A stretch of 64,000 nucleotides of DNA, taken from assembly GCF_006345805.1 (NCBI RefSeq), contig NC_043001.1, positions 39,866,001 through 39,930,000 on the forward strand. Direction: 5' to 3'. Made by a program: the position numbers and the translations under genes. Source of the stretch: Octopus sinensis. Lineage: Eukaryota. Below the pieces are notes generated by a model. That model saw only the letters and a program-made list of their open reading frames with translations. It ran no database searches and had not been told where the DNA came from. This document shows, in pieces, positions 20,144 to 53,835 of the stretch (position 1 is its first letter; every line of letters begins with the position of its first letter).

Positions 20144-20185
20144 CATTAGGTCTCCTTGGAAGATTAACATAAGCAACATCCACGA
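20144..20185 (-). pseudogene. Type B microexon with mutated donor (TT): VDVAYVNLPRRPN
   Basis: 42 bp, homologous to intact B exons; AATG|ttaact in place of gtaagt. Confidence 0.75.
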
Positions 20186-20329
20186 CTTTAAAAAAAAGTA
20201 AAAAAAGAATAAATAACAATGGTTATAAATAACATTTAAAATATGTCAGTAGTGTGTTGACACTAATAATAAATACTAATAAAATAGGCTCAAATGCACA
20301 CACACATATGCACATGTTCCTATGGGGCA

Positions 20330-22000
20330 ACTTATTGAGGTCCATAGACCAAATTTATAGCTGGTGCAAAGTTACAACCAGACCTAGGGTGACATGGTGG
20401 TGGAACAATGAAGTAGAGTATAAGCATAAAGAAACAGGCCTGAAAGGAGTGGAAGAGTGGGAATAGCAGATAAGTATACAAGGTAGCTAGAAGGGAAGCT
20501 AAGTGATGAGTATATTTAGCTAGGGAAAAGTAGAAAGGAAGACATTTGCCAGTGTTCTGCACTGCAAGGGCAAGCGGTGTGTGGTGTTTTGGATTACTGG
20601 ACAGTGTCAGAGAAAATCATGATGTTGTAGGAGAGAAATGTGTCTGCATGGATGATGGTATACTTGCACTTAGAGAATTTTCAAAGAAAATGAAGTGTCA
20701 CTAAATGTGGAGAATGCCTGGGAGAATCTTCTTAAACTGAGTCCAACAGAGGGGCTAGCTATCTGAGTTGAAAGCAGCATGATAGGTAAAGCAATTAAGG
20801 ATATAAAAATAGGGAAAGCCCTTGGTCTATCAAGAATTATCACCAAGATGCTTAAGGTATCTGGTAGTGTGTGATATGGCCTAGTCACCAGTTTAGTTCA
20901 TCAGGTTGTCCAGGAAGGGGTCACACTCAATAACTGATGCAGCAGCATTACAATCAACTATTACAAAGGTAAATGTGATGCCTAGGAGATAAGTAATTAC
21001 AGAGGTATCAAATTACTGGAGCAGGAAATGAAAGTCACTGAGAATGTCATAGCTCAACTAATTAGAAAATAGTTGACATAGATGAGATACAAACGCTATC
21101 TTCTTAATAAGGCAACTGCAGGAGAAGCATTTAGTGAAAAATGGCCTTAGAGTTAACTTAGCAAAGACTAAAATATTAGTAACCAGGAGTGCAGATAAAT
21201 TACTAATATATTCTGGAAAATGGTCATACTGGATATGTATAAAAGGTGTAGTTAGAAATTTCCTATACTGTATCTACTGCAAGTTAGAAGTGCAGTGGAA
21301 TCAGAGGTAAGTTAACAGAGGAAGTAGTCTGTGTGTATGGCAGATGTGCAGGTACAATAAACACTAAGAATACACAGGAAATAGACTTCCTCAAATGCCC
21401 AGAGAGATCCTTAGAGATATCAAATAGTTTCTGTTACATAAATGACCAAATTGGTAGGAGACAAAAATGCTCTAAGTGTAGTTACTAGAATATGAACAAG
21501 CTGGATAAAGTCCAGAGTTATTACTGTTGTTGGTAACAAAGGGTTTTTCTCTGTGAGTGAAAGGCAGATTGTATAAAGCATTTGTATGGACAGCTATGCT
21601 ATATGGCAGTAAAACATGAGTTGTGACTAACAAGGACAGGTGAAGGCTTGAAAGAAATGAAGCAGGCAAACTCTGTTAGATGTGCAATGTCAGTGTGAGA
21701 TTCGACAAAGTGTAAATCTTTTAAGAGAAAAATTGTGTACAAGTGACATCAGATGTAGTGAAGAGAGAAGATTGTGCTGCTATGGTCATGGATGCATATG
21801 GATGAGGACAGCTGCATAAAGAAGGGCTGATCTCAAAATGCAGAGGGAACCTGTAGAAGGGGTAGACCCAGGAAGACATGAGACAAAATAGTGAGAAATA
21901 ATCTTCACCAGGGATGACAGAGGAGATCATAAAGGACAGAGACTATCAGTGATTTGCTGTGCTCAAGAAAACCTACCCAGCTAAGTAAAATTGAGGTCCT
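20330..22000 (+). mobile_element. Degenerate 5'-truncated RTE LINE
   Basis: RT-region homology to 27630-29800 and 50643-52000; followed by tail sequence to about 22660. Confidence 0.78.
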
Positions 22001-22862
22001 AAAGACATTTCTTTTATGTTTATGCCCCACCTCATGCACACAAACCATCATCCAACATTTCCCATTAACCCATCATCCACCACTCACCCCACCTATTGCA
22101 TTCCCTTCCACTCTCTCTCACATACCTACCTGCATGCAATATGTCTCCATTGAATTTCTTTCCCACAACATCCCCTGCCATACCCCCTCCCTCTAACTAT
22201 TCCCACTCATTACATCCCCTCTCCATCTACCACTCGCCTTTCACAATCTTGTGAACTCACTCATCTTCTCCAATCCACTCATCATCACATCTTCATCTTC
22301 TCTCTCTCCTTTCCCTCTCCACTCAAAAACTACCTGAGATAGTCACATTTCTTCTCTAATGCATGACTCATTTTTCTGTCCCTCAATAATCCTCCCACCC
22401 TCAGGTGAGAGCTCTTTTCTTGCTAGTTACTTGGTGACCTCACTGCTGCTGGTGCTATATAAAAGCAACCAGCACACTTTGTAAAGTAATTGGTGTTAGG
22501 AAGGCATCCAGCCATAGAAACCATGCTAAAGCAGACAGCAGGAATTGGTGCTACTTTTTGACTTGCCACTTCCTGTGGCACCGCCTAATCCATGCCAGCA
22601 TGGTAAACAGGTGCTAAACGATGTTGTTGTTGTTGCTGCTGCTGCTGATGATGATGATGATGATAGGAAGAGGTACAGCAATAGCAGGAAGAGGGTTGGG
22701 GAAGGGGAGGAAGAGGAATGGGTGGGAGGATGAGAAGGAAGATGGTTAGATGGGGGAGGGGAGACAGTGGAGGAGAAGAAGAGAGTGATATAGATTATAG
22801 CTGTTAGCTTTCTATTTTTACACTATTCTGAAGTCATGCTGTCCAATATTGTTTATACTTAC

Positions 22863-22922
22863 CAGGGTGTTTCATACACACATATTTCAACTCACTGACT
22901 TCAACATAATAATCTTCCACAG
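22863..22922 (-). CDS. Type A microexon: (x)VEDYYVEVSELKYVCMKHPG
   Basis: Acceptor tttaatttcttgaAG, donor CCTG|gtaagt; 60 bp, phase 1-1, open. Confidence 0.8.
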
Positions 22923-23222
22923 CTTCAAGAAATTAAATATAAAACAAGCATATTTATTGTTTGGGGAGAATGCTTTAACTATTTCTTTATTGCACAGAAA
23001 GTAACAAATATAATACATTTTATAGGTATATATGTATATAATGCTGCAGGGGAACTTGTTACCACTACAATATGTAGTGGCGGGAAGTCAACATGTTGTC
23101 CTGAGACTAACCTAAGAACTTTTATTTTTGGATATAATTGTGTTACTTAGATGTATTGGGTTATTCGCTTCGGCTATTTCCAGAGGCGCATGTGAGTATC
23201 TTACTTATATTCTCTTGTAAGC

Positions 23223-23280
23223 TCAACTGAAGACGAATGAACCCTTATGTGGTTAATTCCGAAATTGATTCAATATTGAG
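23223..23280 (+). ncRNA. Type I hammerhead ribozyme motif (one core-adjacent mismatch)
   Basis: CTCAA-CTGAAGA-cGAATGAACC-loop-GGTTAATTCc-GAAA-TTG-att-CAA-TA/TTGAG: stems I, II and III all pair; the G10.1 position is C. Confidence 0.72.
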
Positions 23281-23431
23281 ATAACGAAATTTAAATGTTC
23301 CAAAGGTTTAGTTGCCCGAATTTCAATTCAACTTTCTGTAGCAAGTAGATTAAATGTGGAATATCAGTATATTGGCTTTAGAATAACCTTCTTTAGCCCT
23401 TGCTTATAAGATATATATATATATAAATATA

Positions 23432-23996
23432 TTGGGTTGTCCAGAAAGTTCATGCCGATTTATAGTAGCTTACCTTTTGACTTATTTTAGAACATGGTTG
23501 AGTTCATAAAATAGGATTTGACTACACCTCCATTTAGAGCACAGTTTGAGCTATCTTTTCGTGGAAGAAGGTTTATGTTCCTATAACCCGTGTTAATTCT
23601 GTAACCCTTTAAAATGGAAGGTAAGAAAGTTCAGTTTCAACACTTGATGCTTTGGAAACCAGACAAAAATTGCTGCAGCTCGGCTGGGATGTGTTACCCC
23701 ACCCTCCATATTCACCAGATATTACTCTTTTGGATTTTCACTTATTCAGGTCTCTGCAGAATAGTCTTAATGGTAAAAATTTCAATTCCTTGGATGACAT
23801 AAAAAGATACCTTGATGAATTCTTTGCCATGAAACCACCTCAATTCTGGGAAGAGGGTATTTTCAAGTTAAAGGAAGATGGAGATGCATTGTGCAACAAA
23901 ATGGTTCATATTTGGTTGATTAAAAATGTAATGGCAAGTATTTATTGACCTTTTTCTTTCCTTTAAACATTGGCACAAACTTTCTGGACAACCCAA
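23432..23996 (+). mobile_element. Internally deleted mariner (DD34D family) with intact TIRs
   Basis: TIRs ttgggttgtccagaaagtt / aactttctggacaacccaa in TA context; 'HPPYSPDITLLDFHLFRSLQNSL'. Confidence 0.9.
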
Positions 23997-24991: not shown

Positions 24992-25033
24992 CATTAAGTT
25001 TCTTTGAAACATTAACATAAGCATTGTCCATGT
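24992..25033 (-). CDS. Type B microexon: (D)MDNAYVNVSKKLNG
   Basis: Acceptor ttaatttcttaaAG, donor AATG|gtaagt; 42 bp, phase 1-1. Confidence 0.8.
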
Positions 25034-25751
25034 CTTTAAGAAATTAAAAACAAAACACATATCATGGCTATATGCATAACAGGCACAGAACATATATGTA
25101 GTAATAATGGGTTGGGGATGTAGGTATATTTTTGGCAGAGAAATGAGTAGCTAAGGTAATCATGGTAGTTAAGGTGTGAAATAAGATTGTTAGCCTAAGA
25201 GTAATCTTTGCTAATGTTACAGTGTTACTTACCACTGCATATGCCCCACTGAACTGGCAGAGGATCAAAAGGACCAATACTATGAGGTTCTTTTGCAGAC
25301 TACCTCGATGATGAATAGCAATAACTTTATTATTATGGTTTCAGCAGATATGTTGGGCAGCACTCCAATGGATTTCATGGCATGCATGGTGGTTAGGGCT
25401 CCAGAAATGAGGAGGATAAAAAGCTGTTTGAGTTTTGAGGTGCAAATGGCTTGTTGCTCTGCAGCACTGCCCTCAGAAAACCTGCCAGCTACCTAATCAA
25501 TTATTAATCTATTTGGCACAGAAGCTAGATTGACTATATTTTTATTAGAAAGCGAGATAGGGAGATGCTTGTCCTTTCCTTGTGAGAAATATACACCTCA
25601 ACATAGGGCTATAGGTTAATGACTTCAGACTTAGGGTTAGATGGACTCAGAGATACAAACCAATCTGGAAAAGGAAGATATAGAAACTTAAGGGGATCCT
25701 TCAAACAGTTAGAGATTCTAACTGAAGCATTTGATGAGAAGGAGGAGGAGA

Positions 25752-27612
25752 CATATATATATATATATTTTAAACGGACTGGACGTAAACATCCAATTCA
25801 CGATGGAATATAGCCAGCAACAACTCCCCTTCCTCGATATCCTCATTAAGAAAGCTAATAATATAATAGAAACAGACATATATTATAAGCCTACAGACTC
25901 TAAGCAATATTTTCCATTCAATTCATGCCACCCCAGACACACCAGGATGAATATCCCCTTCAATCTAGCAAAAAGGATATGCACTATAGTCTCTAACGCA
26001 AACACCAGAGACACACGACTACAAGAACTAAAAGATACCCTTATCACCAGGAACTATCCACCTTCACTTATTGACAAGTGCATTCAACGTGCCCTTCAAC
26101 TTAACATCAAGGAACTGAGACATCCCAAATCAAAGAAAAACTTACAACCAAAAGCCTTACCATACATCTCCACACACAACCCTCTCAATAACGAAGCCTT
26201 CAGCACCATCCTCCACAACATACCCCTCCTAAAAAAAGACCACAGAATGAACACAATCCTCCAAACACACACGATCATAAAAAGCAAGAGACAGCCTAAA
26301 TCCATGAAAAGTCTCCTAACACAAGCCCGAATTCACTCTTCAACACAGAAGCCAACAGTAAAAAAATGTGGAAGACCCAATTGCGGGATATGCGACTATC
26401 TAATTGAGGGATCAGAGTTCTCCTTCAAACAGGGACAACGGTTTACAGTGAAAAGCAACTTCACATGTGCTTCGGAGAACCTAATATACTCACTAACCTG
26501 CTCCGGGTGTCAAGAGCAGTACATAGGCCAAACAAAAAATAGTTTGCGTAAACGAATGGCCCTGCACAGATCCCAGATAAAAATTCCCCAAAACAGAAAA
26601 ATAGCTTTTAGCCAACACATAGACACTTGCGCCAACAAAAAACACCAAGCTTCAGGATTTTCCCCCTCTACCAATTTAGGGACGATACAACCTCGAGACA
26701 ACGAATAAGTAAAGAAACTCTCTTTATTACAAAATACAGGCCACTTCTTAACGGGTCTATGACAAACAATTAATATACCTCAACTTTAGAATAAAAGAAA
26801 TATACACACACAAATATTACATTCCAAAGAATCCATTACTAATCAGTCCCAATCACAGCTATACTCCATAACATGCCAACTTCAAGTCATACAACACCTC
26901 ACTACTTTCACCCATTCATATTCTCCCTTCTCTGTTTTTTTCTTCTTCTTCCTCTTCTTCTTCATCATCATTATCATCATCATCGTCGTCATCATCATCA
27001 CCACCATCATCATCATCATCATCTTCTCCTTCTCCTTCTTCTTCTTCTTCTCCATCATCATCATCATCAACATCGTCATCTTCTTCTTCTTCATCATCAT
27101 CATCAACATCATCTTCTTCTTCTTCTTCTTCTTCTTCTACTTCTCCACCTTCTAACCCTTAACTTTGTCACTAATGTTTTTTAGTATAACACCTACGCAA
27201 ATTCCATAAACAAGCCTTTCAATAGAAATATTCTCCTGAATTGAACTGCGACTGCTAGCCGCCACTGACCATTCAAAATACGACCATCAGGGCACTCCCA
27301 GATTTTCCCACCCCCTTTCCTCATCAGCCTTCTTCCTCTACTACCCTACCAAGAACTCACAACGACCTCCAACACACAAGTGCAAACAAGGGAGTCAGAG
27401 AAAGGCAGAATGCCACTTATATCTGAACACTACTATAGAAATATTCCTTTAAAAAAACTTTTCTTCTAATTTTTCTAAATTTAATTATTTAATCGTTACA
27501 GTTGAAAAGGTCTCAAAATGACCGAAATCAGTACTGAAATGTTCACTATAAAATTATTTTAGCATTTTCTATTTTTGACTTGTTTTTTCATATATATATA
27601 TATATATATATA
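25752..27612 (+). mobile_element. 5'-truncated Penelope-like element (C-terminal RT + GIY-YIG, ORF to 26708)
   Basis: 'IQFTMEYSQQQLPFLDILI', 'YKPTDSKQY', 'CGRPNCGIC', 'YSLTCSGCQEQYIGQTKNSLRKRM'; flanked by (TA)n and a repeated 'acata'. Confidence 0.9.
26935..27150. repeat. (CTT)n/(CAT)n compound microsatellite
   Basis: Directly visible. Confidence 0.95.
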
Positions 27613-30057
27613 TAACATAGAGGACAACTGGAAGTTCTTACAGGACAACCTACTGAGGGCAACAGGCCAAATCTGTAGCAGGAGCAAAGTTTCAGCAAAA
27701 TCAAGGGTGACATTGTGACAGAAAAGTGAGGCAAATAAAGCCATAAAAGCAAAGAGATAGGCTTGAAAAGAGTGAGAAAATGGGGGCAGCAAAGAACTGT
27801 GTCTGGTAGCTAGACAGAAAGCTAGGCACCAGGTTTATTCAGCAAGAGTAGAAGCAGAAAGGAAGAGGTCTGCCAATGTTTTACAATGTGAGGATCAGAA
27901 GTGAGAGGTATTTCTCATTGCAAGACAGTGTATAAGAGAGAATCAAGATATTGTAAGAGAGGAGTATGTATGGATGGCTAGCATTATGCTTGCACTTAGT
28001 GATCCTGAAAAGAAAGTGGCATTGAAGTGCTACTAAGAAAGGTTATCAAATGTGGAGAATGCATGGGAGAAAGAGAGTCTCTCCAACATTAACCAAACAG
28101 TGGGGCCAGCTGTCAGAGTTGACAGTAGTATGATAGATAAAGCAATTAAAGATATGGAAACAAGAAAATATCCAACAAAGTAGGTTATGGTCTAGTTACC
28201 TGGATAATCATGTTACACAGGAAGATATCATCCCCAATACCTGGTATAGCAGCCATTGCAAGGATAAAGTTATAGGTCATGAAATTTACAAAGAGAGTTA
28301 TTGCTCAAATAATTAGAAACAGAGACTTGACAAGATGCACTGTTGTTTTGTGCTACTGATGCCATCTTCCTAGAGAGACAACTACAGGAGAAAGATTTAG
28401 GTAAGATAAGCCATTGCACTTGGCATTCATTGAGTCCCTTCAACAGAGTCCCTCTTTCTGCAATGTGGTCTCTGAGAAAGCTAGGGATAGACAAAATTTT
28501 CTGAAAGCTGTACAAGTCATTTATGGGCGTGCTGTCAGTAAGATGAGAGTTTCCCATAAGTAAGTACAGTGATGAATTTAGAGTACAGGTAGGTGTCCAC
28601 TAGGACTTGGTTCTCAGTACCCTCCAAATTCATCATTGTGCTCCAGGCCATAACACATTAATTTAAGACCAACTGCCCTTGTGAATTACTATGCACTGAT
28701 GATCTCATGCTCATATCAGAATTGAAAAAAGAAATTCCAGATGTTGAAGCAAAACCTGGAATTGAAGGGGCTTAAAATTAGTTTAATAAAGACCAAGGCT
28801 TTAGTAAGCAAGAAAACAGACAGGGCCTTACTTCATGCAAATGGCCCTGCTTGTTATGTAGGAACTGTTTAGGTAGCACTAACTATGGATACACAAGATG
28901 TGCATAGGAATCAGTGGAAAGTTAATAAAGGAAGTAGTCTTTGCATGTGGAAGATGCACAAGTGTCATGGAGACTAAACATACAAAAGAAATTGATTCTT
29001 TCAAATACCTTGGAGGCTCCCTAGAAGTAGTGGATAATTTCTGATACTTAGGTGACCTATTTAGCAATGGAGAAGGATTTTCAGAAAGTGCAGTTGCTAG
29101 GATGGAGAAAATTCAGAAAGATATTACCTTTGGTTTCAAATTTTGGCAAAAGGCCAGCAATTTCAGGGGAGAGGATAAGTTGATTACATCAGCCCCAGTG
29201 TTAAACTGGCTCTTATTTTATTGACCCAAAAGGATGGAAAGCAAAGTTGACTTTGGCAGAATTTGAACTCAGAACATTAAGATGGCATTCTAAAAATTCT
29301 GCCAGCTTAACTCCTTAAGAGATATTACCTTTGTTAGCAACAATTGTATAATGCCTCTGTTCATAAAGTAATGTTACATGATAATGAGGTATGGGCTCTG
29401 AATGCAGGAGACATACCAAGAAATAGAGAGGAAGAAAGCTAGTATATTCCACTGCATGTGCAATGTTATTGTGCATGTGTAACAAGGTGCTAATGTACTA
29501 AGAGAAAAATTAGTCATAAAAGAAATCAGATGAAGTGTGCAACATAGAAGACTGTGCTAGTTTGATCATTGAATGCATATGGATGAGGACAACTATGTAA
29601 AGAAATGCTGATCACTTAAAGTGGTTGGAATTACAGAAAAAGGGAAACCCTAAGAGGTATGAGACAAAGTAGTGAAGGATGACTTCAAATACTGAACCTT
29701 ACAGAGGAGATGACAAAAGACCAAACTGATTGGGGGGTTTTTGTGCTCAGTGAGACCTGTTAAGCTATCCAACTAATGCAAGCATGGAAAATAGATGTTA
29801 AACAATGATGATGATGATGATGTATTGGTACAACCATAACAAATATTAATGAAATACACTTAAACACAGATACACGTGTGCACACACACACACACACACA
29901 AAGGCAAGGGTGTGTGGTCAAGAAACTCATTTTAAAACTGTATAGTTTGGGGTTCAGTCCACTGTGCAACATCTTGAGCAAGTATCTTCTACCATAGCCC
30001 TGGACTGACCAAAACCTTGGGAGTGAATTTTGTTAACAGAAACTCAGTGGGAAACTG

Positions 30058-30116
<59 letters not shown>

Positions 30117-30489: not shown

Positions 30490-30548
30490 TAATGTGTTTC
30501 ATGCATAAATATTTGGGCTCAGTAATTTCAAAATATGATCTTCCACAA
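30490..30548 (-). pseudogene. Disrupted type A microexon (1-bp deletion, donor lost)
   Basis: Acceptor intact; GTGGAAGATCATATTTTGAAATTACTGAGCCCAAATATTTATGCATGAAACAC aligns to type A; no GT donor. Confidence 0.75.
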
Positions 30549-32931: not shown

Positions 32932-34207
32932 TACGAGGGACGTTCAATAAGTAATGCCTCTGACCCACTTGCAATTGTTTGATCTAGCTGAAATTTTGCA
33001 TGTGCAATCATTTATATCTATATATCTGTGCAATCATTTATATGGTTTCTGATTTACAGGTGTTTGAACCGAGTCAAGTGTGAAATGGAGCCTGTTGAGT
33101 GTCGAGCAGTGATCCGGTTTTTGTATTTGAAAGGACGCACACCACGGGAGACTTTTGATGAAATGAAAGTAACTTATGGTGATGATGCCCCATCATATGA
33201 CCTTGTAAAACGCTGGCATCGTGAATTCAAACATGGTCGGAACTCTGTGGAAACAGCTCCCAGATCTGGTCGCCCCTTCTGCCATTGATGAGGCATCTGT
33301 CCGTCAAGTTGAGGCTGCCATTTTGGAAGATTGACGCATAATTATTCGCCAAATAGCCCATGAGGTCAAGTTTAGTACCGGGTCTGTGGAAACTATCATT
33401 CATGACCATTTGCATATGCAAAAGGTGTCTGCCAGATGGATTCCCAGGTTGCTCACGCCTTTCCAGAAGCAAGAACGCGTCGAGTGCTCGAGGGTGAATT
33501 TGGAGATGTGCCAAGAAGATGAGTCAAAATTTTTCAAAAGACTGATTACACAGGATGAAACCTGGGTCCATCACGATGATCCAGAGACCAAAGCCCAGTC
33601 AATGCAGTGGAAGCACCGTGACTCACCCCCTCCAAAGAAGGCAAGGGTGCAGCCCTCCGCTGGCAAGGTCATGCTCACAGTCTTCTGGGACCAGGACGGA
33701 GTAGTGATGACAGATTTCCTGGCAAAGGGTACCACAATTACAGGAGCCTATTATGCTTCACTTTTGAGGAAATTAAGAGAAGCTATCAAAATCAAGAGGC
33801 AGGGCAAGATCAGCAAAGCATCCTCCTCCTGCAGGACAACGCTCCGGTCCACAACTCGCTTGTCGCCAGATCAGAAGCACAGGCGTATGGCTATGAACTC
33901 CTCCCCCATCCCCTACTTTCCTGACCTTGCACCCTCTGATTTTCACCTCTTCCCAGTCATGAAGTTGTTTTTGAAAGGAAAGCGTTTCCCAGATGATGCA
34001 GCCTTGATTTCTGAAGTCACGTTCAGGTTGGAGGACCAAGCTGGGGTCTTCTACAAAAACGGTCTCCAGAGCTGCATCAAGCAATGGGAGAAATGCGTAA
34101 CTCTGGGTGGTTCCTATGTAGAAAAAGACTAATAGCTGTGCCAAGTTTCGTTGCTCTACTGCTATGGGAAGTGGGTCAGGGGCATTACTTATTGAACGCC
34201 CCTCGTA
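32932..34207 (+). mobile_element. Full-length mariner (DD34D) with a frameshifted transposase
   Basis: About 38-bp TIRs tacgagggacgttcaataagtaatgcc / ggcattacttattgaacgcccctcgta; WIPRLL, QDETWVHH and YFPDLAPSDFHLF motifs. Confidence 0.93.
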
Positions 34208-34340: not shown

Positions 34341-34382
34341 CATCAGGTTTCTTTGGAATGTTAGCATAAATAGCGTCCAAAT
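34341..34382 (-). CDS. Type B microexon: (D)LDAIYANIPKKPDG
   Basis: Acceptor ttatatttcttaaAG, donor GATG|gtaagt; 42 bp. Confidence 0.82.
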
Positions 34383-34618
34383 CTTTAAGAAATATAAAGG
34401 AAAATAAATAACATAGCTGTAAATAATATTTATGATATGTTAGTAGTGCTCTAATACTATCAGAATAAATATTAAAGGCATACACTGAAACAATGCATGT
34501 GCACACACACACATACACACACACACATCAACAGAAAAAAGTTAGTGTTAGCATTCTATTTAAGTTTTGCACTATTCTGAAGACATGCTGTGTACTTCCA
34601 ATATTGATTCATACTCAC

Positions 34619-34678
34619 CAGGTTGTTTCATGCATACATATTTGGGCTCACTATCTTCAGCATGTTCATCTTCCACAA
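34619..34678 (-). CDS. Type A microexon: (x)VEDEHAEDSEPKYVCMKQPG (copy 1 of 3 identical)
   Basis: Acceptor aaatttcttgaAG, donor CCTG|gtgagt; 60 bp. Confidence 0.8.
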
Positions 34679-35090
34679 CTTCAAGAAATTTAATATAAAA
34701 TGGGCTTATTTATTTTTAGGATATTTTAAGTATTTCAATATTGCACAGAAAGTAGCAAAAATAAAATGTATATTTTGTATATAAACATGAATTTGAGAAA
34801 GAAAATATGTTTGAAATACAACCAAACTGAATGTAATGTATAAGTTCTTCATCTTCTCATAGATGTATTGAAAAACAAAAATATTGCCACACAAATTCAT
34901 TTCTTATGAAGAAACAGAAAGATCAATTTCGATAGATAAGACATATCAAATTTAGTGTTTGGAGAGAAAGTTCCTCCATAAAGTAAGACACTAAAAATTT
35001 TTTCTATCCACAAAATTAGCATTTTGTTATAGAAATTACATGAAAGAAGTACATACTGGAATATTCAAGAGATTGAAAAATGAACACAAA

Positions 35091-35900
35091 TCAAGAGTGC
35101 AGAGAACAGGGATGGACTATTGAGTATTACCACCTGACAGTGGAGGCAAGAGGTTTCATTGAAAGGAAAATGATGACGTCATTTAACAGAGGTTTGCATT
35201 TTCGAGCTCAGAGCTGAGAAAAGTAATAAGGAGGATACAAGAGGCAGTCGAAAAAGCCAGCTTCTATGTATGGCTGAAGTGAGAAGACCTAAAATGGCTT
35301 GAAAACCATAACATACCAACTGGGGAATAGCATTGCTAGGTGAGGCTGGCTGACACTTAAGCAGCATCACTGATTGACAGTTGGGCCAAGGTAATGATCT
35401 CATTCTTTGCATGCCCTCCCTCTGGTTTGAAGACATGTACCACCAAACAGCTGGTCAGATCTGACTGCTGGAACTGAAACTAACACAACACTGTTCGAAG
35501 GTAGATTTAAAGAGGGCATAGGCTAAAATTACATGCCCTTCCCCTCCATTGGTTAGTGGAAGCTTAGACAGTGTCATGCGGCAGTTAGCTGGTGCTGGCC
35601 GCTGGAGCCTACCGGTGAGTATTTGATGGGAAATTTGGCAGGATAGTCAGTTGCCCACTGACATTCATTGACACTGCATTGAAGAAACCAAAGAACAAAA
35701 GAAAAAAGGAGAAAGAAGAAACGCACTCGACACCAGAGCTGAAGACACCTTTAAGAGATGAGGGGCCCACCACATCAAAAAACGGTTGAGGAGTAGGGAC
35801 CGAAACTGGACGTGGTTTCTCCTGATGTCTTTAGCCACTGGATCCTATAAAGAAGCTGTTGAGATGGTGAACCACAAAATGTGGTTGGAATTCCTAACAG
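35091..35900 (+). mobile_element. 3' fragment of an RLE-type (HERO-like) non-LTR retrotransposon; duplicate at about 40136-40940
   Basis: 'ECREQGWPVEYYHLTVEARGF...RKVIRRIQEAVEKASFYVWLK*' resembles the RLE ORF C-terminus; empty site in the paralogous intron at about 43285-43310. Confidence 0.6.
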
Positions 35901-36078
35901 CTAAAATATGCAAGTAATGAGCAGATACTACTACAATGAATACCAAGATACACTCAAACACTCACATATGAACAAAAATAAAAAGAGTGCTAATTCAAAT
36001 TATGGTTGTTAGCTTTCTAATCATGATTTAGACTATTCTAAAGTCATGTTGTGTGCTATCAATGTCTGTTATATTTTC

Positions 36079-36138
36079 CAGGCAGTTTTGGGCATATATT
36101 TTGGTGCTCACAAACTTCAAAATATTGATGCTCCACAC
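36079..36138 (-). pseudogene. Type A microexon with GA donor: VEHQYFEVCEHQNICPKLPG
   Basis: Open 60 bp, acceptor intact, CCTG|gaaaat. Confidence 0.72.
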
Positions 36139-39620: not shown

Positions 39621-39665
39621 ATTCTGAAGGCATGCTGTGTTTTTCCAATGTTGATTCATACTCAC

Positions 39666-39725
39666 CAGGTTGTTTCATGCATACATATTTGGGCTCACTA
39701 TCTTCAGCATGTTCATCTTCCACAA
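39666..39725 (-). CDS. Type A microexon VEDEHAEDSEPKYVCMKQPG (copy 2)
   Basis: Identical to 34619-34678; AG/GT intact. Confidence 0.8.
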
Positions 39726-41123
39726 CTTCAAGAAATTTAATATAAAATGGGTTTATTTATTTTTAGGATATTTTAAGTATTTCAATATTGCACAGAAAGT
39801 AGCAAAAATAAAATGTATATTTTGTATATAAACATGTATTGAGAAAGAAAATATGTTTGAAATACAAACAAACTGAATGTAATGTATAAGTTCTTCATCT
39901 TCTCATAGATGTATTGGAAAACAAAAATATTGCCACACAAATTCATTTCTTATGAAGAAACAGAAAGATCAATTTCGATAGATATGACATATCAAATTTA
40001 GTGTTTGGAGAGAAAGTTCCCCATAAAGTAAGACACTAAAAATTTTTTCTATCCACAAAATTAGCATTTTGTTATAGAAATTACATGAAAGAAGTGCATA
40101 CTGGAATATTCAAGAGATTGAAAAATGAACACAAAACAAGAGTGCAGAGAACAGGGATGGCCTGTTGAGTATTACCACCTGACAGTGGAGGCAAGAGGTT
40201 TCATTGAAAGGAAAATGATGACGTTATTTAACAGAAGGTTTGAATTTTCGAGCTCAGAGCTGAGAAAAGTAATAAGGAGGATACAAGAGGCAGTCGAAAA
40301 AGCCAGCTTCTATGTATGGCTGAAGTGAAAAGACCTAAAATGGCTTGAAAACCATAACATGCCAACTGGGGAATAGCATTGCTAGGTGAGGCTGGCTGAC
40401 ACTTAAGCAGCATCACTGATTGACAGTTGGGCCAAGGTAATGATCTCATTCTTTGCATGCCCTCCCTCTGGTTTGAAGACATGTACCACCAAACAGCTGG
40501 TCAGATCTGGCTGCTGGAACTGAAACTAACACGACACTGTTCGAAGGCAAATTTAAAGAGGGCATGGGCTAAAATTACATGCCCTTCCCCTCCATTGGTT
40601 AGTTGAAGCTTAGACAGTGTCATGCGGCAGTTAGCTGGTGCTGGCCGCTGGAGCCTACCGGTGAGTATTTGATGGGAAATTTGGCAGGATGGTCAGTTGC
40701 CCACTGACATTCGTTGATACTGCATTGAAGAAACCAAAGAACAAAAGAAAAAAGGAGAAAGAAGAAACGCACTCGACACCAGAGCTGAAGACACCTTTAA
40801 GAGACGAGGGACCCACCACATCAAAAACGGTTGAGGAGTAGGGACCGAAACTGGATGTGGTTTCTCCTGATGTCTTTAGCCACTGGATCCTATAAAGGAG
40901 CTGTTGAGATGGTGAACCACAAAATGTGGTTGGAATTCCTAACAGCTAAAATATGCAAGTAATGAGCAGATACTACTACAATGAATACCAAGATACACTC
41001 AAACACTCACATATGAACAAAAATAAAAAGAGTGCTAATTCAAATTATGGTTGTTAGCTTTCTAATCATGATTTAGACTATTCTAAAGTCATGTTGTGTG
41101 CTATCAATGTCTGTTATATTTTC

Positions 41124-41183
41124 CAGGCAGTTTTGGGCATATATTTTGGTGCTCACAAATATCAAAATATTGATGCTCCACAC
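41124..41183 (-). pseudogene. Type A microexon with GA donor: VEHQYFDICEHQNICPKLPG
   Basis: Duplicate of 36079-36138. Confidence 0.72.
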
Positions 41184-42790
41184 CTTTATGAAATTAGATT
41201 AAAAACAGGTTGTTTATTGTTTGGAAAGGATGTTTTAAATATGTTATTGTTACACTGTAAGTCATAAAGCAAATGACAAAATATACTCATCATCATCATC
41301 ATCATCGTTTACCGTTCATGTTCCAAGCTAACATTAGTGGGATGGTATCACAAAAGCCAGTCAGGCTGACACCTGCACTAGACTTCTGTGATTGTTTTGA
41401 CAGGATTTTTATAGCTGGATGCCCTTCCTAACACTAAGTCCACTCAGCGGAGTGGACTTAGTGCTTTTTATGTGGCAAAAGCACAGGCAAAGTGAGTAGT
41501 GCTTTTATGTGGCACAAGCACAGTTGAGGATAGTTTTGGCAAGGTTTTTACAGCTGGATGCCCTTCCAAATACCAACCACTTTACAGTGTGGACTGGGTG
41601 CTTTTAAGTGGCACCTGCACTGACAGAGTTACCAAGTACTTGCAAGACAAAAACTTTTAAGAGGGAGAGAGGCTTTGGAGGGAGTGATGATCAAAAGTTA
41701 TAGCGAGACAGATACAGGTGTCTTGCTGTAGAGCAGGGTTTCTCAACAGGAGCCATATGACCCTCTAGGGGCCATGAAACATTTCTTGTAGGCCACAAAG
41801 CTAAGTTTGAAAAATAGGGAGCCACAGGGGTCTGCGAGGGTGGGGGCACAGAAATTTTGGGGATCGTAAATTATTAACATGTAGGTATGTATTTTTATTT
41901 GTAAAATGCATGTTATACATATACATATAAGAAACACATGTATATGCAGTTATAATTTTGATGAATCATCCTTATGTACTAATTTTATATTACACACATA
42001 TATGTACCTAAAGAGCACATGTTAGAATATTAGATTTTGAGTGTTGTATGTTTGGTTCATAAGATGAACAGTTACATCATTGCATCACACCAAATTGCTC
42101 CAAAATTTTAAAGCTGCAAGACATACATATATAATGGACAGCACAGAAGGCAAAGTCGCAGTTATTAATCAAAACTCCACTTCAACATTATCGACAACAT
42201 GGAAAATCCATCCAATCAACAACGTCCATGCTAACTGGTTAACATTTACACAAGTCTCTTTAAGATTCACTTTTCTTTCTGGATTGTCAAATTATACCAC
42301 TTCTTTCTCTCTCTCTTCTTATCTCATCTTACTTTTGTTCTTGATTCTGTACTTTCTTGTTTAATTATATTTTTCTGCATCGTTAGTGTGCAAGTATCTA
42401 CTCCTTTTTACTTCATTTTACCTAAGTATTTATAAGTTACTTTGATTATCATAAATATTCCATCTAGATCTATAGTGAAAGAGGCGAGGGATGGAAAGGT
42501 CAATCTACCAAGTTAAATCATGATCAGAAGATATTGGGGATTCAGTGCTTACTTAAAATAGTTGTGCTTTTTGTGCACTGTGTTCATTGACAGCATCTGG
42601 TTGCCAAACACATAGGAAACATTTGAATGATGCACTTATAAATGTTATCAAAGCTGTCAACTTGATAAAAAAGTATGCACTGCAAAATCGCCTCTTTAAG
42701 CAATTATATGAAAAAAATTACAGGAATTTGAACGACTTGCGTTGTATTCTGAAGGCATGCTGTGTTTTTCCAATGTTGATTCATACTCAC

Positions 42791-42850
42791 CAGGTTGTTT
42801 CATGCATACATATTTGGGCTCACTATCTTCAGCATGTTCATCTTCCACAA
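42791..42850 (-). CDS. Type A microexon VEDEHAEDSEPKYVCMKQPG (copy 3)
   Basis: AG/GT intact. Confidence 0.8.
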
Positions 42851-43490
42851 CTTCAAGAAATTTAAAATAAAATGGGTGTATTTATTGTTAGGACAGGATA
42901 TTTTAAGTATTTCAATATTATACAGAAAGTAGCAAAAACATATTATAATCTATATTTTGTATATAAACATTTGTATATAAACATGTATAGAGAAAGAAAA
43001 TATATTTGAAATGCAGCCAAACTGAATGTAATGTATAAGCTCTTCATCTTCTCAATGATGTATTGAAAAACAGAAAAATATTGCCTCATAAATTCATTTC
43101 TTATGAAGAAACAGAAAGATCAGTTTTGATAGATATGGTATATCAAATTTAGTGTTTGGAGAGAAGGTTCTTCCATAAAATGAGACACTCAAAATTCTTT
43201 TCTATCTGCAAAATGCTATTATTTTTTTATAGAAATTACATAAAAGTAGTGCATATTGAGAACTTTAAGGGATTAAAAAATGAACACAAAACATTGATAT
43301 AACATCTAAAATATGCTGGTAGTGAGCATATACTATTACAATGAATACCATTAACATACACTCAAACACTCACATATATACAAATGTAAAAAGAGAGGAG
43401 TTAATTCAAATTATGGTTGTTAGATTTCTAATCATGATTTAGACTATATCTAAAGTCATGCTATACACTATCAATGTCTGTTATACTTAC

Positions 43491-43550
43491 CAGGAGGTTC
43501 TGGGCATATATTTTGGTGCTCACAAACTTCAAAATATTGATGCTCCACAC
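43491..43550 (-). CDS. Type A microexon: (x)VEHQYFEVCEHQNICPEPPG
   Basis: Acceptor ctaatttcatgaAG, donor CCTG|gtaagt. Confidence 0.8.
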
Positions 43551-44073
43551 CTTCATGAAATTAGATTAAAAATGGGTTGTTTATTGTTTGGAAAGGGTGT
43601 TTTAAATATGTTATTGTTACACTGTAAGTCATAAAGCTAATGTCAAAATATATTGTAATACATATTTTATATATAAACATATATTAGGTAAAAAAAATTA
43701 TTTGAAATCCAGCCAAACTGAGTGTACAGTATGAGTCTTCATCCCCTTCTCTCATTGATGTATTCAGAAAAGGAAAAGAATTGTCTAATAAATTCATTTG
43801 GTATGAAAAAGTAAGGAGAAATAAAGTCTAATTTTATTTAATATGGCAAATTATGAAAATATGTGTATACACTGGATTATTAATATGGATTAATATGTGT
43901 AAGAAGTCAAGTTCTTTATATATGCAATGGGGTTTTCACATTTTCAAACTTTTCTAATTAAAAACATATGTATGTTATTAAGCAGTATATTCTACTCAAA
44001 GAAAGGATAAGCTAAGATATTTTTTAACTCTTGCTTTAATGATTATAATTTTATTGAATTGCCTATATGCTAA

Positions 44074-44110
44074 CAATCAAATTTCTTAGAAATAAGCACC
44101 ATCTTTGTTT
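44074..44110 (-). pseudogene. Deleted type B microexon remnant
   Basis: 'gatggtgcttat...ttctaagaaatttgat' sits in B-exon flanking context; splice sites degraded. Confidence 0.55.
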
Positions 44111-44353
44111 TCAAGAAAATCATTTTAAATATAAATAATGTGACAATAAATAACATTTAAAATGTGTTGCTAGTGTGCTGATACTACTAAAATAAATATT
44201 AATGAATGCACAAGCACATGTACACAGACATACACACATACACACAATGATAGGGTATATTTAGATTGTTATAAAATGTAGTCATTAGCTTTCTGTTCAA
44301 GTTTATACTATTTTGGGATTATGTCATGTGCTATCAATATTGATTATACTTAC

Positions 44354-44413
44354 CAGGGAGTTCTAGGCACATATCTTGGAGTTCACTAACTTCAATATAA
44401 TGATCATCCACAG
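44354..44413 (-). CDS. Type A microexon: (x)VDDHYIEVSELQDMCLELPG
   Basis: Acceptor ctaatgttttgaAG, donor CCTG|gtaagt. Confidence 0.8.
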
Positions 44414-45097: not shown

Positions 45098-45130
<33 letters not shown>

Positions 45131-45275: not shown

Positions 45276-45277
<2 letters not shown>

Positions 45278-46267: not shown

Positions 46268-46309
46268 CTTCAGGTTTCTTTGAAAGATTATCATAAGCAC
46301 CATCCAGGA
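46268..46309 (-). CDS. Type B microexon: (x)LDGAYDNLSKKPEG
   Basis: Acceptor ctaattcttaaAG, donor GAAG|gtgagc. Confidence 0.8.
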
Positions 46310-46544
46310 CTTTAAGAATTAGAGAAAAGTATAAATAACTTGATTATGAATAAAATTTAAATATATTAGTAGTGTGTTGATATTACCAGAAAAGATACTA
46401 AGTAAATAGTCTCATAGTCACACACACACACACATTAATAGTTTGATATAAATTTGTTATTAACTTTCTGTTCAGATCTTGCTATGTACAATCCGTATCA
46501 ATTATACTTACTGGGGTTTTTTGAATAAATAACTTAATGAGGGT

Positions 46545-49500
46545 CACTGACCAAATTTATGGCTAGTGCAAAGTCCCTTCCAGCCCTAAGGTGACATGAT
46601 AGGATAATGGAACAGTATAGTACACAGGGCCATTAGACCAAAGAAACAAATCTGGAAGGATGGGCAGAATAGTAGTTGCAAAAATCTATATCAGGCAACC
46701 AGAAAGGGAGCTAGAAAACGTTTATTTTATTGTTATATCCATACACCTCCAATATCATAGCACAGTTGATATTTCCGGTGATAGATGAAGAATATACTGT
46801 AACAGTGTTATAACAATACAAAATAAAAACAGCAGCAGTAACAAACACATAAACCAACAATTAATATTTCCAACTCACTAACTTGAACTGTAACCTGTAC
46901 CTGGACTTTGAAGACCAAACTACAAACTGCTGCTTATGTCAGACTGCTACTATTTATATGTAGTGGTCTCATCTATTTCCATCAGAGGGTGTCGTACTCT
47001 CACCACAACATCTCTCCTTTGTGATTTTGAGTTCCAAGTAAATAAATAAATAAATTTTATTTATTATTGTTTTTTTAGTATCTTTTTCACTTGGGCCTTA
47101 TCTCAAGGTGTTCAGTCTGCTTCTGTTTTCTCACACTGGTTCTATGCGACTCCATTTCTGTTAGTACTGGGACATCAAATACATAAAAAATACTTCCATA
47201 GGAATCTCTCCACATTCCTCAGAATGTCTCTTCTTTTGCTGATTTATGTGTCTCTTATGTTCCCAACATGGTCCTTTAATTAGATAGTTTCTATTTTTTT
47301 GGTTACACAGCCATCCTCCCATTCTTCTTTGCCATTACTGTAGGTTTTATAATACACTTTGTCTCCTATTTCGAAATATTTCATTGTATCTTTCATATTT
47401 CCTTTACATCTTTTTTTCTCTGGCAATAAATTATCAAAAATCAATTCTGTTCTTCTCACAAACATCAACTCTGTGGGTGACTTTCGTGAATTTGTACATG
47501 GCTTTCTCTTATAACTTTAGAATCGTATCTCTTTAAATACTTGACATAATTCTCATATGTTCAATCATTTTTTGCCTCACTATTGTCCTGTTGCTGCAAT
47601 TTCGATTTTCTTCTGGTGAAGCTAGCCACTTATTTGACCACTTCCAGCTGTAGATTATATAAAGAACTCCTTTGCACATGGTTTATCCCAAACCTTTACA
47701 TCTTGCCCTACTATCTGACACTATCATATCATGACATGAAATATCCAGCCACTAAGTAAAGAAATTTCTCTTGTTTTCAATTGTTCATCATTCTTTTATT
47801 CATTTAACATGTATTACTAACATGCTAATATTCTTGAGTTAAAATAACTTCATAACCTGTTTTCTTTCTCTAATAATTTTAGAATCGTATCTCTTTAAAT
47901 ACTTGACATAATTCTCATGTGTTCTGTCATTCTTTGCCTCACTATTGTTCTCTTGCTGCTATTTTGATTTTCATGTGGTGAATCTAGCCATTGTTTGTTC
48001 ACAATGTGCCCACCCTTTCCCGCCCCACTACCAATACCAGAAATCCCTTCTCTTGTACTGGAAATCCCTTCTCTCATACCAGTAATCTCTTCTCTTATAC
48101 TGGTAATCTCTTCCCTTACACTGGAAACTCCACAGAGCTCTGCCTCACTTCTGCACCAGAAGACCTTCATATCTCTGTCCCTCCCTCTTATAATGCTTGT
48201 AATGTTGGTACATTTGTCAGAGTAGGCATATTTATTATTGCATCTGCCCTCAATGGATCAGACCATCTACCATTTTTATCAATTATTTGCCCTAAGTACT
48301 TAATTTGAGGCAAAAAGAATTTGCATTTTTCTTCACTCAAAGTGAACCCGTACTCTTTAATTTTCTTGAAAAAAGCTTTTATGTTCCGCATGGTATTCAC
48401 ATGAATTACTCTTAATCAATATATTGCCCAAATAATGGATTGCAAATTCACAATCATATAACATAGTATCCATGGTTTGCTAAAATATTGTCGGTGCAAC
48501 CTTTAATCCAAAAGGCAACCAGGTATATTTGTACAATTCTCTATGTATATTTATTGTCAGGTTCTTTGAGCATTTGTCATTTACTTTAAGCTTCAGACAG
48601 ATCCAATTTGAAGAAAATTTTTCCACCATTTAATTTTGCAAAAATGTCTTCTGAAGTCAGGAGTGGATGGTAGCATGTCTTTAAGAAGTCATTCAATCCT
48701 GTAGAGAAATCAGCATATAGCCTGATCTTATTATCTTTCTTTTTAATGCACACCATGGACACCGTCCACTTCAAGTAATCCACCTTTTTGATGATTCCAC
48801 TCTTTTCCAGTTTGTCCAACTCTTCATTTACAATTTCAATTGCTACAAACGGTACTTTTCTGTTAGATTTAAATATAGGCACAGCGTTTTTCCTTACTTG
48901 AAAGCAGGTTTCAGTCTTTTTACATAGACCTCAGTCCTCCAGGAAACATAGACCTCAGTCCTTGAGGAAACATCTTTTTCTCCTCAATTCCTCAGACGAT
49001 TCATTTTTAACGGAACAACCATTTATGTCTTTGCAGTAGAGACTTATGGGGAGGTACCATAAGTCAAATAACTCCAACCAATCTGTACCAAACAGATTGA
49101 TTGTATTTTCCACAATGAATATTTTTGCTTTGCATGTTTCTCCTTGAAATTTGACATCTGTACACATTTTGCCCATGAAATGTACTTAATTGCCCATCAC
49201 GCCACATGCAATGTTCGCTGTTTTACATAACCTCGGTTTCCCAATTTTTCTCCATATAGCCACATTTATGAGAGAAATATCACTACCCATACTCAACTAT
49301 AGTTTAATGCTTACACTATTTATGTATGAATTTTCTTATTTTTGTGTCTCGTTCACTTTCTGCTGAAAGCACCTTAGAACTTTTTGAGTTTGACCCTCAT
49401 AATCTTGTCCTGTAGTGTGAGCTCTTGTGACCAAGTTTCTGACAACTATAGCATTTTCGGTTTTTAAACAGACACCCTTTTCTGAAGTGTAGGTCTCCAC

Positions 49501-52005: not shown

Positions 52006-52139
52006 ACCATCACCCATGGCCTCAATCCACTTATGCATACCTTTCCTTCTTGGGACACAAAACCCTACTTGTGAAGACCTGTTGAGGCAAGTGAAAATCA
52101 AAATCAAAAAAATCAAAAAATCAAAAATCAAAATCGATC

Positions 52140-52598
52140 AACATGAATGGAAATTGTCGCTGTGATATCAGTGCTGGTGGCACATAAGAGAACCATCCGA
52201 ACGTGGCCGTTGCCAGTGCCGCCCTGACTGGCTTCCGTGCCGGTGGCACATAAAAAGCACCATCCGATCATGGCCGCTGCCAGCCGCGCCTGGCCTCCAT
52301 GCTGGTGGCATGTAAAAAGCACAATCCGATCATGGCCATTTGCTAGCCTCGCCTGGCCTCCATGCTGGTGGCACGTAAAAAGCACCATTCAACCATGGCC
52401 GTTTGCCAGACTTGTCTGGCACCTGTGCAGGTGGCACGTAAAAAGCACCCACTACACTCATGGAGTGGTTGGCGTTAGGAAGGGCATCTAGCCATAGAAA
52501 CATTGCCAGATCAGACTGGGCCTGGTGCAGCCTTCTGGCTTCCCAGACCCCAGTTGCACTGTCCAACCCATGCCAGCATGGAAAGCGGATGCTAAACG

Positions 52599-52630
<32 letters not shown>
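52140..52630 (+). mobile_element. RTE-tailed SINE with internal tandem units of about 53 bp
   Basis: A closely similar inverted copy lies at 63372-63722. Confidence 0.8.
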
Positions 52631-52632
<2 letters not shown>

Positions 52633-52658
52633 CTGCTTCTCAATGTACGATGTGAAAA

Positions 52659-52710
<52 letters not shown>

Positions 52711-53542
52711 GACTGTATTTCTATCTTTCTCTTTAACTCTTTCACACCTTCCTCTCCTTCTTGTCCTACTGGTGTAGTCAAGTATCTACTCTTTGCAGAG
52801 ATAGAGATATCTCTGTCCCTCTATCACACTCTTACCACTTGTTTCGGATACAACCAGTTCTTTTGGCTCTACTCCCTCTCTCAGCTGAGAGATCTTTGTC
52901 TTGCAAGCTACTAGGTGATTCCACAGGTGCTAGTGCCAGTGTATAAATCACCTGTGCTGATGCCACATAAAAAGCACCTGTGCTGATGTTGTAAAAAGCA
53001 CTTGTTTTGGTGCCAAGTAAAAGGAGCTTGTGCTGGTGCTACATGAATAGCACCCAATAGACTCTGGAAAGTGGTTGGCATTAAGAAGTGCATCAAGCCT
53101 TGGAAGCATTGTCAAAACAGACATTTAGAACCTGGTGCAGCTCTCCAGCTTGCCAGTTCCTGTCAAACTGCCCAACCCATGCCAGCACAGAAAATGGACA
53201 TTAAATGATGATGATTTTATACAAAAATATATGTATACAACATGTTTTGAACAACAGCATAATGATCTTCCCCAGATTCAAGAAATTAAATAATATTTGA
53301 GCAGAATTATTTGCTTGGAGAATATGTTTTAACTATTTTGTTGTTGCACAAAAGTAGTATAAAAATAATATTGAAATATATTATAATGTATATTTTATGT
53401 ATAAATGTTATTTAGAAACAAAAATAGTGTACTGTATAATGTCAGAATCTCAGAATGGCTACAGCCTTGGGCTGAAATCAGTAAAAGAATAAACTTGTGC
53501 TTTAATGAATGTAATTTATTAAAGAAATGCTCATATACTTAC

Positions 53543-53584
53543 CATCAGTTTTCTCTGAACCATTCATACAAGCAATGTCCATAT
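53543..53584 (-). CDS. Type B microexon with Tyr replaced by Cys: (D)MDIACMNGSEKTDG
   Basis: Acceptor ttaatttcttaaAG, donor GATG|gtaagt. Confidence 0.75.
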
Positions 53585-53820
53585 CTTTAAGAAATTAATA
53601 CAAAGAATAGATAACATGTTATAAATAAAATAAAAACAAACTATGTTAGTGTACTGATACTACCAAAGTAAATACTAAGGAACTAGACTCACAAACACAT
53701 TCATACTCATACACATACACCAATTAATAGAAAAATGTTAGAGATTGATATTATTTAGGGTTGCTTGCATTCTTTCAAGTTTCAAACTGTTCTAAAATTA
53801 TGGTGTGTACTATCAATATT

Positions 53821-53835
53821 GGCTATTTTCCACAT
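53821..53835 (-). pseudogene. Type A microexon remnant (3' part deleted)
   Basis: cttgaAG-ATGTGGAAAATAG then jumps to downstream intron sequence. Confidence 0.55.

Follow-up and report, generated by a model that had tools for sequence, protein, structure and literature searches.

The stretch of DNA analysed here (the window) comprises 64,000 nucleotides of Octopus sinensis (NCBI RefSeq assembly GCF_006345805.1, contig NC_043001.1, positions 39,866,001 to 39,930,000 of the forward strand) and holds the 3' half of LOC115212119, an already annotated gene for an uncharacterised type-I membrane protein with immunoglobulin (Ig)-like ectodomains. Its minus strand carries an array of short paralogous exons of two types, A and B, which had been noticed from the sequence alone in a preliminary description. 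In order to identify the gene, we searched 1.84 billion representative proteins exhaustively with HMMER and obtained a 464-amino-acid protein with 99% identity as well as longer relatives. The 464-amino-acid match (P0001) is RefSeq XP_036359229.1, annotated as "uncharacterized protein LOC115212119 isoform X1" of O. sinensis. Joining the window exons in the order transmembrane (TM) exon, the ten intact exons of types A and B, a further exon of 56 bp, and the terminal exon at 15102-15019 reproduces residues 209-464 of this protein as an exact translation. The array thus encodes the cytoplasmic tail downstream of the TM exon, as had been proposed; it is not hidden, as had been claimed, since the NCBI model already uses all ten intact exons. 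A word-indexed protein search with the concatenated exon peptides gave no match, even though the 99%-identical RefSeq protein exists. Because the exhaustive search found that protein, the negative result reflects a miss of the tool rather than absence and calls for caution with concatenates of short exons. The non-Octopus HMMER matches (P0004, P0006, P0011) were rejected as unrelated repeat proteins with the repeats YD(S/T)SFGN or YDSLTGKP.

The TM exon (62315-62211) encodes a single helix, judged by eye, FLGTIIGCTVGSVLLLITLGLVAY, which is followed by the basic stop-transfer sequence KFHKIR and then by the cytoplasmic tail. Ig domains were found above the respective Pfam cut-offs in XP_036359229.1 (I-set, Ig_3, and ig) and in the family protein P0038 (I-set, Ig_3, and Ig_2). 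In the O. sinensis assembly, two Ig-domain exons of 261 and 309 bp precede the TM exon by 6-9 kb, past the end of the window. In the 76,704-bp O. sinensis locus analysed alongside the window (L002), positions 17723-76704 and beyond match the window, and a window coordinate c corresponds to position 81723-c.

The array consists of 12 recognisable type-A units, six of which retain an intact 60-bp exon, and 10 type-B units, four of which retain an intact 42-bp exon, all on the minus strand (Table 1). The preliminary description had listed at least 11 A and 6 B exons on this strand and had reported six A and four B copies with AG/GT sites and without stops; these ten exons could all be located exactly. 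Searches with unit profiles in nhmmer gave minus-strand matches only, namely nine near-full A units (E 1e-38 to 1e-64) plus remnants and six near-full B units (E 1e-37 to 1e-68) plus four remnants. The A and B units are all co-oriented between ~19950 and 54340, and the match strength is far above chance. A repeat scan of the window additionally revealed two families at about 20 to 54 kb, one of 11 copies with 57 nt and one of 5 copies with 103 nt, which on the minus strand represent candidate exons between tttcttgAAG acceptors and GTAAGT donors. Tandem Repeats Finder did not detect the array in the window because the units are too diverged and too interrupted. One A+B unit of 875 bp is homologous to every other unit over its full length, which identifies a pair of A and B, ~0.7-0.9 kb in size, as the ancestral repeat. 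The repeat is accordingly an A+B unit of ~700-875 bp rather than two separate units of 240-280 bp. We ruled out that the units originated from a non-coding satellite or a dispersed transposable element, as the copies are co-oriented, local, and in frame within orthologous and paralogous coding sequences. Within the units, an intron stretch directly before the A exons (positions ~700-875 of the A+B unit) is 75-79% identical among copies, slightly above the exons (~70%); examples are 44684-44509, 43110-42952, 39959-39812, 34913-34765, and 31176-30972. This conservation could reflect a splicing-regulatory element or gene conversion.

All ten intact exons are open, are flanked by AG/GT sites, and are in phase 1-1 with lengths of 60 or 42 bp, hence divisible by 3 as had been stated earlier; the intact A exons follow the pattern AG...GT[AG]AGT and are open in phase 1. 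At every exon end, the codon is split after its first base, which is a G in all window exons. Therefore, the next exon sets the junction residue, and each exon forms a self-contained module that can be skipped in frame. Type A encodes 20 amino acids with the family consensus ..EEQYAE.SEP.YL.MK.. and type B 14 amino acids with the family consensus.MD..Y.N.S.KP. To describe module conservation, we compared distinct modules (22 A, 28 B) from 12 family proteins. The best-conserved A positions are E8, S10, Y14, L15, and M17 (...E.S.P.YL.M...), and the best-conserved B positions D3, Y6, N8, S10, and P13 (.D..Y.N.S.KP.). Family-wide, Y14 is present in 21/22 and M17 in 17/22 A modules, and Y6 in 23/28 and N8 in 24/28 B modules. 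A regex scan of the window tail, which has 222 residues and 12 tyrosines, identified four YxN and four YxxM motifs; an A exon followed by a B exon generates a YxxM-x8-YxN[IV] pair. The same scan found no canonical immunoreceptor tyrosine-based inhibitory, switch, or activation motif (ITIM, ITSM, or ITAM) in the window tail, and a single relaxed ITAM-like pair, YVCM-x8-YANI.

The 3' end of the gene provides a further level of variation. Terminal exon T2 (15102-15019) is open only in phase 0, and the phase 1-1 array therefore needs the 56-bp exon (19359-19304), which was recognised only through the match to XP_036359229.1, to reach T2 in frame. The preliminary description had named 15019-15102 as the terminal exon, but had not listed the 56-bp exon that brings it into frame and had missed the alternative terminal exon T1 (17026-16982). 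When the 56-bp exon is skipped, T2 is read in phase 1 and yields DYQ* (asterisk, stop), an ending known from paralogs. Three configurations are predicted: the 56-bp exon with T2 (the RefSeq model), the 56-bp exon with T1 (the Octopus bimaculoides ending), and skipping of the 56-bp exon (DYQ*). Judged by these reading frames, the C-terminus appears to be switchable as well, with inclusion of the 56-bp exon giving IEGDGYNSTLNTSY or ITSEGP... and skipping giving DYQ*. The start of T2, ATTACCAGTGA, is kept in O. bimaculoides, where the phase-0 frame is broken by a 2-nt indel. A rule-based scan for further phase-compatible exons, covering the stretch from the TM exon to the array as well as the region downstream, yielded weak candidates only, e.g., 12284-12249.

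We then examined the splicing of the modules in related genes. LOC106869178 of O. bimaculoides was taken as the ortholog because of common synteny and intron blocks that are 88-93% identical. Seven current RefSeq isoforms and at least seven further models (from an earlier RefSeq release and UniProt) are available for it, and 14 of these were aligned. They are identical outside the tail, and every difference is the presence or absence of a whole 14- or 20-amino-acid module, each of which is its own exon in the ortholog locus. The isoforms contain 4 to 11 modules, and in O. sinensis the RefSeq model uses each of the ten exons. The first B module (53543-53584; ortholog locus L001 54698-54739) appears in O. 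bimaculoides in older database models and not in current RefSeq isoforms. For the paralog LOC106874069, eight RefSeq isoforms correspond to three cassette modules (two B, one A) combined with two C-termini, GKISQNFWDDLIYV or DYQ, and LOC106879981 shows one B skip together with an alternative GYQ ending. The NCBI pipeline builds alternative isoforms from transcript or RNA-seq alignments. Combinatorial cassette splicing, as it had been suggested for the array, is thus supported at the level of annotation for the O. bimaculoides ortholog and paralogs, and we infer that it operates at the O. sinensis locus too. As a separate observation, the LOC106879981 isoforms P0014/P0054 are identical except that X2 has a different, paralogous N-terminus of ~330 amino acids with about three Ig domains, which suggests alternative 5' ectodomain cassettes in this neighbouring family member.

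Relatives of the protein were found in the exhaustive HMMER search only in O. sinensis, Octopus vulgaris, and O. bimaculoides, as several paralogous genes on the same chromosome-scale records. Literature searches with the LOC identifiers and for cephalopod Ig/ITIM receptors yielded no description of the family. One paralog, P0002 (1220 amino acids), has a 423-residue tail with a long series of A and B modules that ends in DYQ. An O. vulgaris paralog, P0022, carries a third module type of ~17 amino acids, D[VD].[ED]LYAKVNKP.K.., repeated five times, which extends the set of tail modules beyond A and B; its C-terminus contains the ITIM/ITSM-like NYAEL and TIYADL. In the O. sinensis assembly, LOC115212119 is nested wholly within the span of LOC115212116, the gene for P0002, and both are on one strand; no exon of P0002 was found in the window or in the 76.7-kb O. 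sinensis locus. In the O. vulgaris model P0013, an N-terminus nearly identical to that of P0002 (about the first 320 residues) is joined to the Ig-TM-tail cassette of the window, and the O. bimaculoides ortholog likewise has a full 5' ectodomain. Either the O. sinensis gene models are mis-partitioned, or common 5' exons feed alternative 3' cassettes. The nested gene models and the O. vulgaris model suggest that shared 5' exons may be joined to alternative Ig-TM-tail cassettes.

The array shows signs of change. About half of the A and B copies are dead, having lost the donor, the acceptor, or the frame, or having been truncated by an insertion. The two copies of a recent tandem segmental duplication (34573-39619 and 39620-42744) are 97-98% identical, the first being enlarged by insertions; each has two A exons, one live and one dead, and a single B remnant. 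Compared to an interspecies intron divergence of ~6%, this identity indicates that the duplication is younger than the split of O. sinensis and O. bimaculoides. Additionally, the O. bimaculoides locus yielded no syntenic counterpart of the exons B25033 and A22922. The B exon at 20185-20144 is followed by a TT donor in O. sinensis and by a GT donor in O. bimaculoides, which uses it as a cassette exon, and the FEDEH/VEDEH copies differ in order and number between the two species. The dead copies, the young duplication, and the species-specific gains and losses together show that the array is turning over, and the pattern is one of birth and death driven by unequal crossing-over. Transposons have broken up the array, as noted earlier, and we located Penelope-like, mariner, and short interspersed nuclear element (SINE) insertions in it.

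In light of these results, we consider it probable that the window encodes the tail of an Ig receptor that is built from paralogous cassette mini-exons, carries predicted SH2-docking tyrosines tuned by splicing, and belongs to an array that is turning over. The tail, probably disordered, is encoded by tandem paralogous phase 1-1 mini-exons, each of them a module that can be skipped in frame. Phosphotyrosines in YxN are bound by the Grb2-type class of SH2 domains and those in YxxM by the PI3K p85 class. From these motif classes we infer that every exon contributes a single phosphotyrosine site for docking. The tyrosines conserved in the YxN motifs of B, in the YxxM motifs of A, and in the pairs formed by an A and a following B would be phosphorylated and serve as docking sites for SH2-domain adaptors, with Grb2/Drk-type proteins as candidate partners for YxN and PI3K p85-type proteins for YxxM. 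Cassette splicing would then set the number and the mix of these predicted sites. A wider proposal is more tentative: these genes may form an Octopus-restricted, immunoreceptor-like Ig family with "splice-programmable" tails, in which each mini-exon adds an SH2-docking motif, A-to-B junctions form ITAM-like pairs, splicing sets the number, order, and pairing of motifs, unequal crossing-over remodels the array between species, and shared 5' ectodomain exons may join alternative Ig-TM-tail cassettes.

Several observations weigh against the docking-tail reading, and many of them also favour the alternative that the two Ig exons, the TM exon, and the tail are a decaying and mostly redundant 3' cassette, i.e., a partial tandem duplicate drifting into a pseudogene without selected function, from which RefSeq strings together exons that look spliceable. 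Among the copies in the window, exon identity is about the same as intron identity (0.76 versus 0.74 and 0.69 for A; 0.70 versus 0.63 and 0.72 for B), and the ratio of nonsynonymous to synonymous differences (pN/pS) is 0.76 for A and 1.95 for B without an excess at third positions. This comes close to the equality of exon and intron divergence that the preliminary description had associated with a dead array, and the tail is therefore at best weakly constrained. Between O. sinensis and O. bimaculoides, exons are 95.3% identical (548 sites) and introns 93.9% (17,783 sites), which is not a significant excess (p=0.20), and a test of the ratio of nonsynonymous to synonymous substitution rates (dN/dS) on the tail exons alone is likewise not significant (p=0.18). 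Moreover, the O. sinensis model is truncated at its 5' end and nested in the span of LOC115212116; it opens with an odd first exon of 20 amino acids and is without the N-terminal Ig domains of its ortholog. It is annotated with the all-inclusive tail only, its annotated variants being N-terminal, so that the suggested combinatorial splicing has a basis in annotation in the related genes but not at the locus itself. The dead half of the units, the transposon-filled introns, and the donor lost from a B exon that O. bimaculoides uses point in the same direction. On the other hand, although the older lineages have diverged from one another by 25-35%, ten exons still have an uninterrupted reading frame together with acceptor and donor sites. 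By the Nei-Gojobori method, dN/dS between the species is 0.48 for the tail exons with a 1:1 counterpart (5 synonymous and 10 nonsynonymous changes) and 0.42 for the two Ig exons (p=0.02), and the comparison of nonsynonymous with synonymous changes over tail and Ig exons combined gives p=0.007. The gene overall thus appears to be under moderate constraint; the tail has a ratio like that of the Ig exons, with too few sites for proof. None of the motif tyrosines differs between the two species, the ortholog has many annotated isoforms from two annotation generations, and the O. vulgaris model links a full 5' ectodomain to the cassette of the window. We therefore regard complete decay as unlikely, and this gene copy may be decaying in part.

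The function assigned to the modules is a separate question. SH2 binding is a prediction from motif classes, and several included modules have lost a consensus tyrosine (MDIACMNG, the first tyrosine of VEDEHAED, DMCLE, and NICPE). If the modules are real and spliced, their tyrosines might instead belong to YxxPhi signals for sorting or endocytosis, or to another linear motif; indeed, 10 of the 12 tyrosines of the window tail fit YxxPhi (Phi = L/I/M/V/F), and the lack of canonical ITIMs, ITSMs, and ITAMs is in line with such a role. Yet the asparagine at +2 in B (24/28) and the methionine at +3 in A (17/22) are far more conserved than a generic YxxPhi signal would require, the tyrosines are preceded by acidic residues as is typical of tyrosine-kinase substrates, and many-fold repetition is unusual for sorting signals, which makes this explanation rather improbable. 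More improbable still is that the isoform diversity is an annotation artefact, caused by short reads that map ambiguously across near-identical exons and create false skipping junctions. Some O. bimaculoides isoforms do differ only among near-identical FEDEH... modules, and the window contains three identical A exons. However, unique modules are also skipped (VLDGAYDNLSKKPE in X2, VMDVAYVNLSRRPN in X3 and X7), the three cassette modules of LOC106874069 are all distinct in sequence, and older, separately made database models show the same module-wise pattern.

The docking-tail reading can be compared with known systems. The closest functional analogue is PECAM-1/CD31, likewise a multi-Ig type-I receptor with a tail made from a run of short exons. 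Its cytoplasmic domain is encoded by the short exons 9-16, including a 19-amino-acid exon 14, several of which contain tyrosines, and combinatorial splicing changes its function (PMC2132561). In contrast to the octopus exons, which are amplified, fall into two types, and carry YxN/YxxM, the PECAM-1 tail exons are not tandem paralogous copies, and their key motifs are ITIMs. When all PDB chain sequences were searched by phmmer with the full ortholog as query, no match reached E<=0.001, and no sequence homology to PECAM-1 was found. Short in-frame exons, tandemly duplicated and used as cassettes, also give titin PEVK and collagen-type arrays disordered or repetitive segments of variable length; the modules there are mechanical or structural, whereas the octopus modules look like signalling motifs in a receptor tail. 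In micro-exon genes, exon symmetry allows skipping without a change of frame. The octopus array resembles the micro-exon genes of Schistosoma in its very short exons separated by long introns; for the schistosome genes, this structure and alternatively spliced isoforms of one such gene are documented (PMC10526429, PMC10399815). Micro-exon gene proteins, however, are secreted, trematode-specific, and almost wholly encoded by micro-exons, whereas the octopus protein is a membrane receptor with Ig exons of normal size in which only the tail is built this way, from modules with tyrosine motifs. Finally, Dscam shares the principle of duplicated exon arrays in an Ig-superfamily receptor gene that yield isoform diversity, but its clusters are mutually exclusive and encode parts of the ectodomain, whereas the octopus tail exons are used many together. 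A mutually exclusive array of the Dscam type was ruled out because many exons are co-included (all ten in the RefSeq model; 4 to 11 modules in ortholog isoforms).

What is new about the locus is the undescribed architecture of a receptor tail made of amplified cassette mini-exons with motifs, together with its turnover, rather than hidden exons. If the splicing and the function of the motifs are real, it would represent a natural system in which individual exons specify the valency and the composition of a phosphotyrosine docking tail and splicing varies them, and in which exon amplification and loss could remodel signalling output over short evolutionary times. The family would then also be a candidate lineage-specific receptor family, possibly for immunity or cell recognition, in cephalopods, where such receptors are poorly known.

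Table 1 Features of the LOC115212119 array and other elements located in the window (T1 and T2, alternative terminal exons; Tyr, tyrosine; Cys, cysteine; ORF, open reading frame; RT, reverse transcriptase; LINE, long interspersed nuclear element).
Feature	Position	Strand	Remark
TM exon, 105 bp, phase 1-1, ITEVFLGTIIGCTVGSVLLLITLGLVAYKFHKIR	62211..62315	-	XP_036359229.1 residues 209-242
A unit remnant, downstream-intron part only, exon gone	53740..53870	-	nhmmer
Intact B exon, 42 bp, MDIACMNGSEKTD; motif Tyr is Cys in both species	53543..53584	-	O. bimaculoides ortholog has donor GC instead of GT
A exon stump cut by SINE insertion	53255..53276	-	
A unit remnant, exon 3' part and intron, degenerate	46440..46560	-	nhmmer
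Intact B exon, LDGAYDNLSKKPE, YxN	46268..46309	-	42/42 identical to O. bimaculoides ortholog
Intact A exon, 60 bp, VDDHYIEVSELQDMCLELP	44354..44413	-	57/60 identical to O. bimaculoides ortholog
Dead B unit: acceptor AG gone, 8-bp internal deletion, no GT donor; stump ~44108-44092	43978..44239	-	
Intact A exon, VEHQYFEVCEHQNICPEPP, second Tyr lost	43491..43550	-	59/60 identical to O. bimaculoides ortholog
B unit remnant, upstream intron only	43259..43381	-	nhmmer
Intact A exon, VEDEHAEDSEPKYVCMKQP, copy 1 of 3 identical exons	42791..42850	-	spliced model
Dead A exon, donor GT changed to GA	41124..41183	-	
B unit remnant	40939..41014	-	nhmmer
Intact A exon, VEDEHAEDSEPKYVCMKQP, copy 2 of 3	39666..39725	-	spliced model
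Dead A exon, donor GA	36079..36138	-	
B unit remnant	35893..35969	-	nhmmer
Intact A exon, VEDEHAEDSEPKYVCMKQP, copy 3 of 3	34619..34678	-	spliced model
Intact B exon, LDAIYANIPKKPD, YxN	34341..34382	-	spliced model
Dead A exon, 1-2 bp short, no GT donor; upstream intron part at 30961-30895, separated by insertion	30491..30548	-	
B unit remnant cut by SINE	29810..29888	-	nhmmer
Intact B exon, MDNAYVNVSKKLN, YxN	24992..25033	-	no syntenic counterpart found in O. bimaculoides locus
Intact A exon, VEDYYVEVSELKYVCMKHP, both Tyr retained	22863..22922	-	no syntenic counterpart found in O. bimaculoides
B exon, dead donor TTAACT, VDVAYVNLPRRPN	20144..20185	-	O. bimaculoides ortholog GTAACT, used there as cassette exon
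56-bp exon, TVNGSLNNIYENNNQRNE, contains YEN, phase 1 to 0	19304..19359	-	52/56 identical to ortholog
Alternative terminal coding exon T1, IEGDGYNSTLNTSY*	16982..17026	-	intact; orthologous to O. bimaculoides terminal exon; unused in O. sinensis RefSeq model
Terminal coding exon T2 of RefSeq model, phase 0, ITSEGPCSSDEQKEPRTCNIITPSRTE* (27 aa)	15019..15102	-	spliced model
Recent tandem segmental duplication, 34573-39619 versus 39620-42744, 97-98% identical	34573..42744	.	
Penelope-like retroelement fragment, GIY-YIG, in array intron	25731..26708	+	
Mariner-type transposase ORF, in array intron	33386..34132	+	
Long open RT ORF (563 aa, Penelope-like) and LINE-type RT fragments	among 22-1713 and 4999-7763	+	

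The window as a whole is AT-rich and full of SINEs and of LINE and Penelope reverse transcriptases, and it contains one mariner element. Within SINE-like elements with (GAT)n or (ATG)n tails, we also observed tandem repeats of 63-66 bp (52172-52449, 63525-63705, and 44697-44933); of these, the first two are 63-bp arrays and run in opposite directions.

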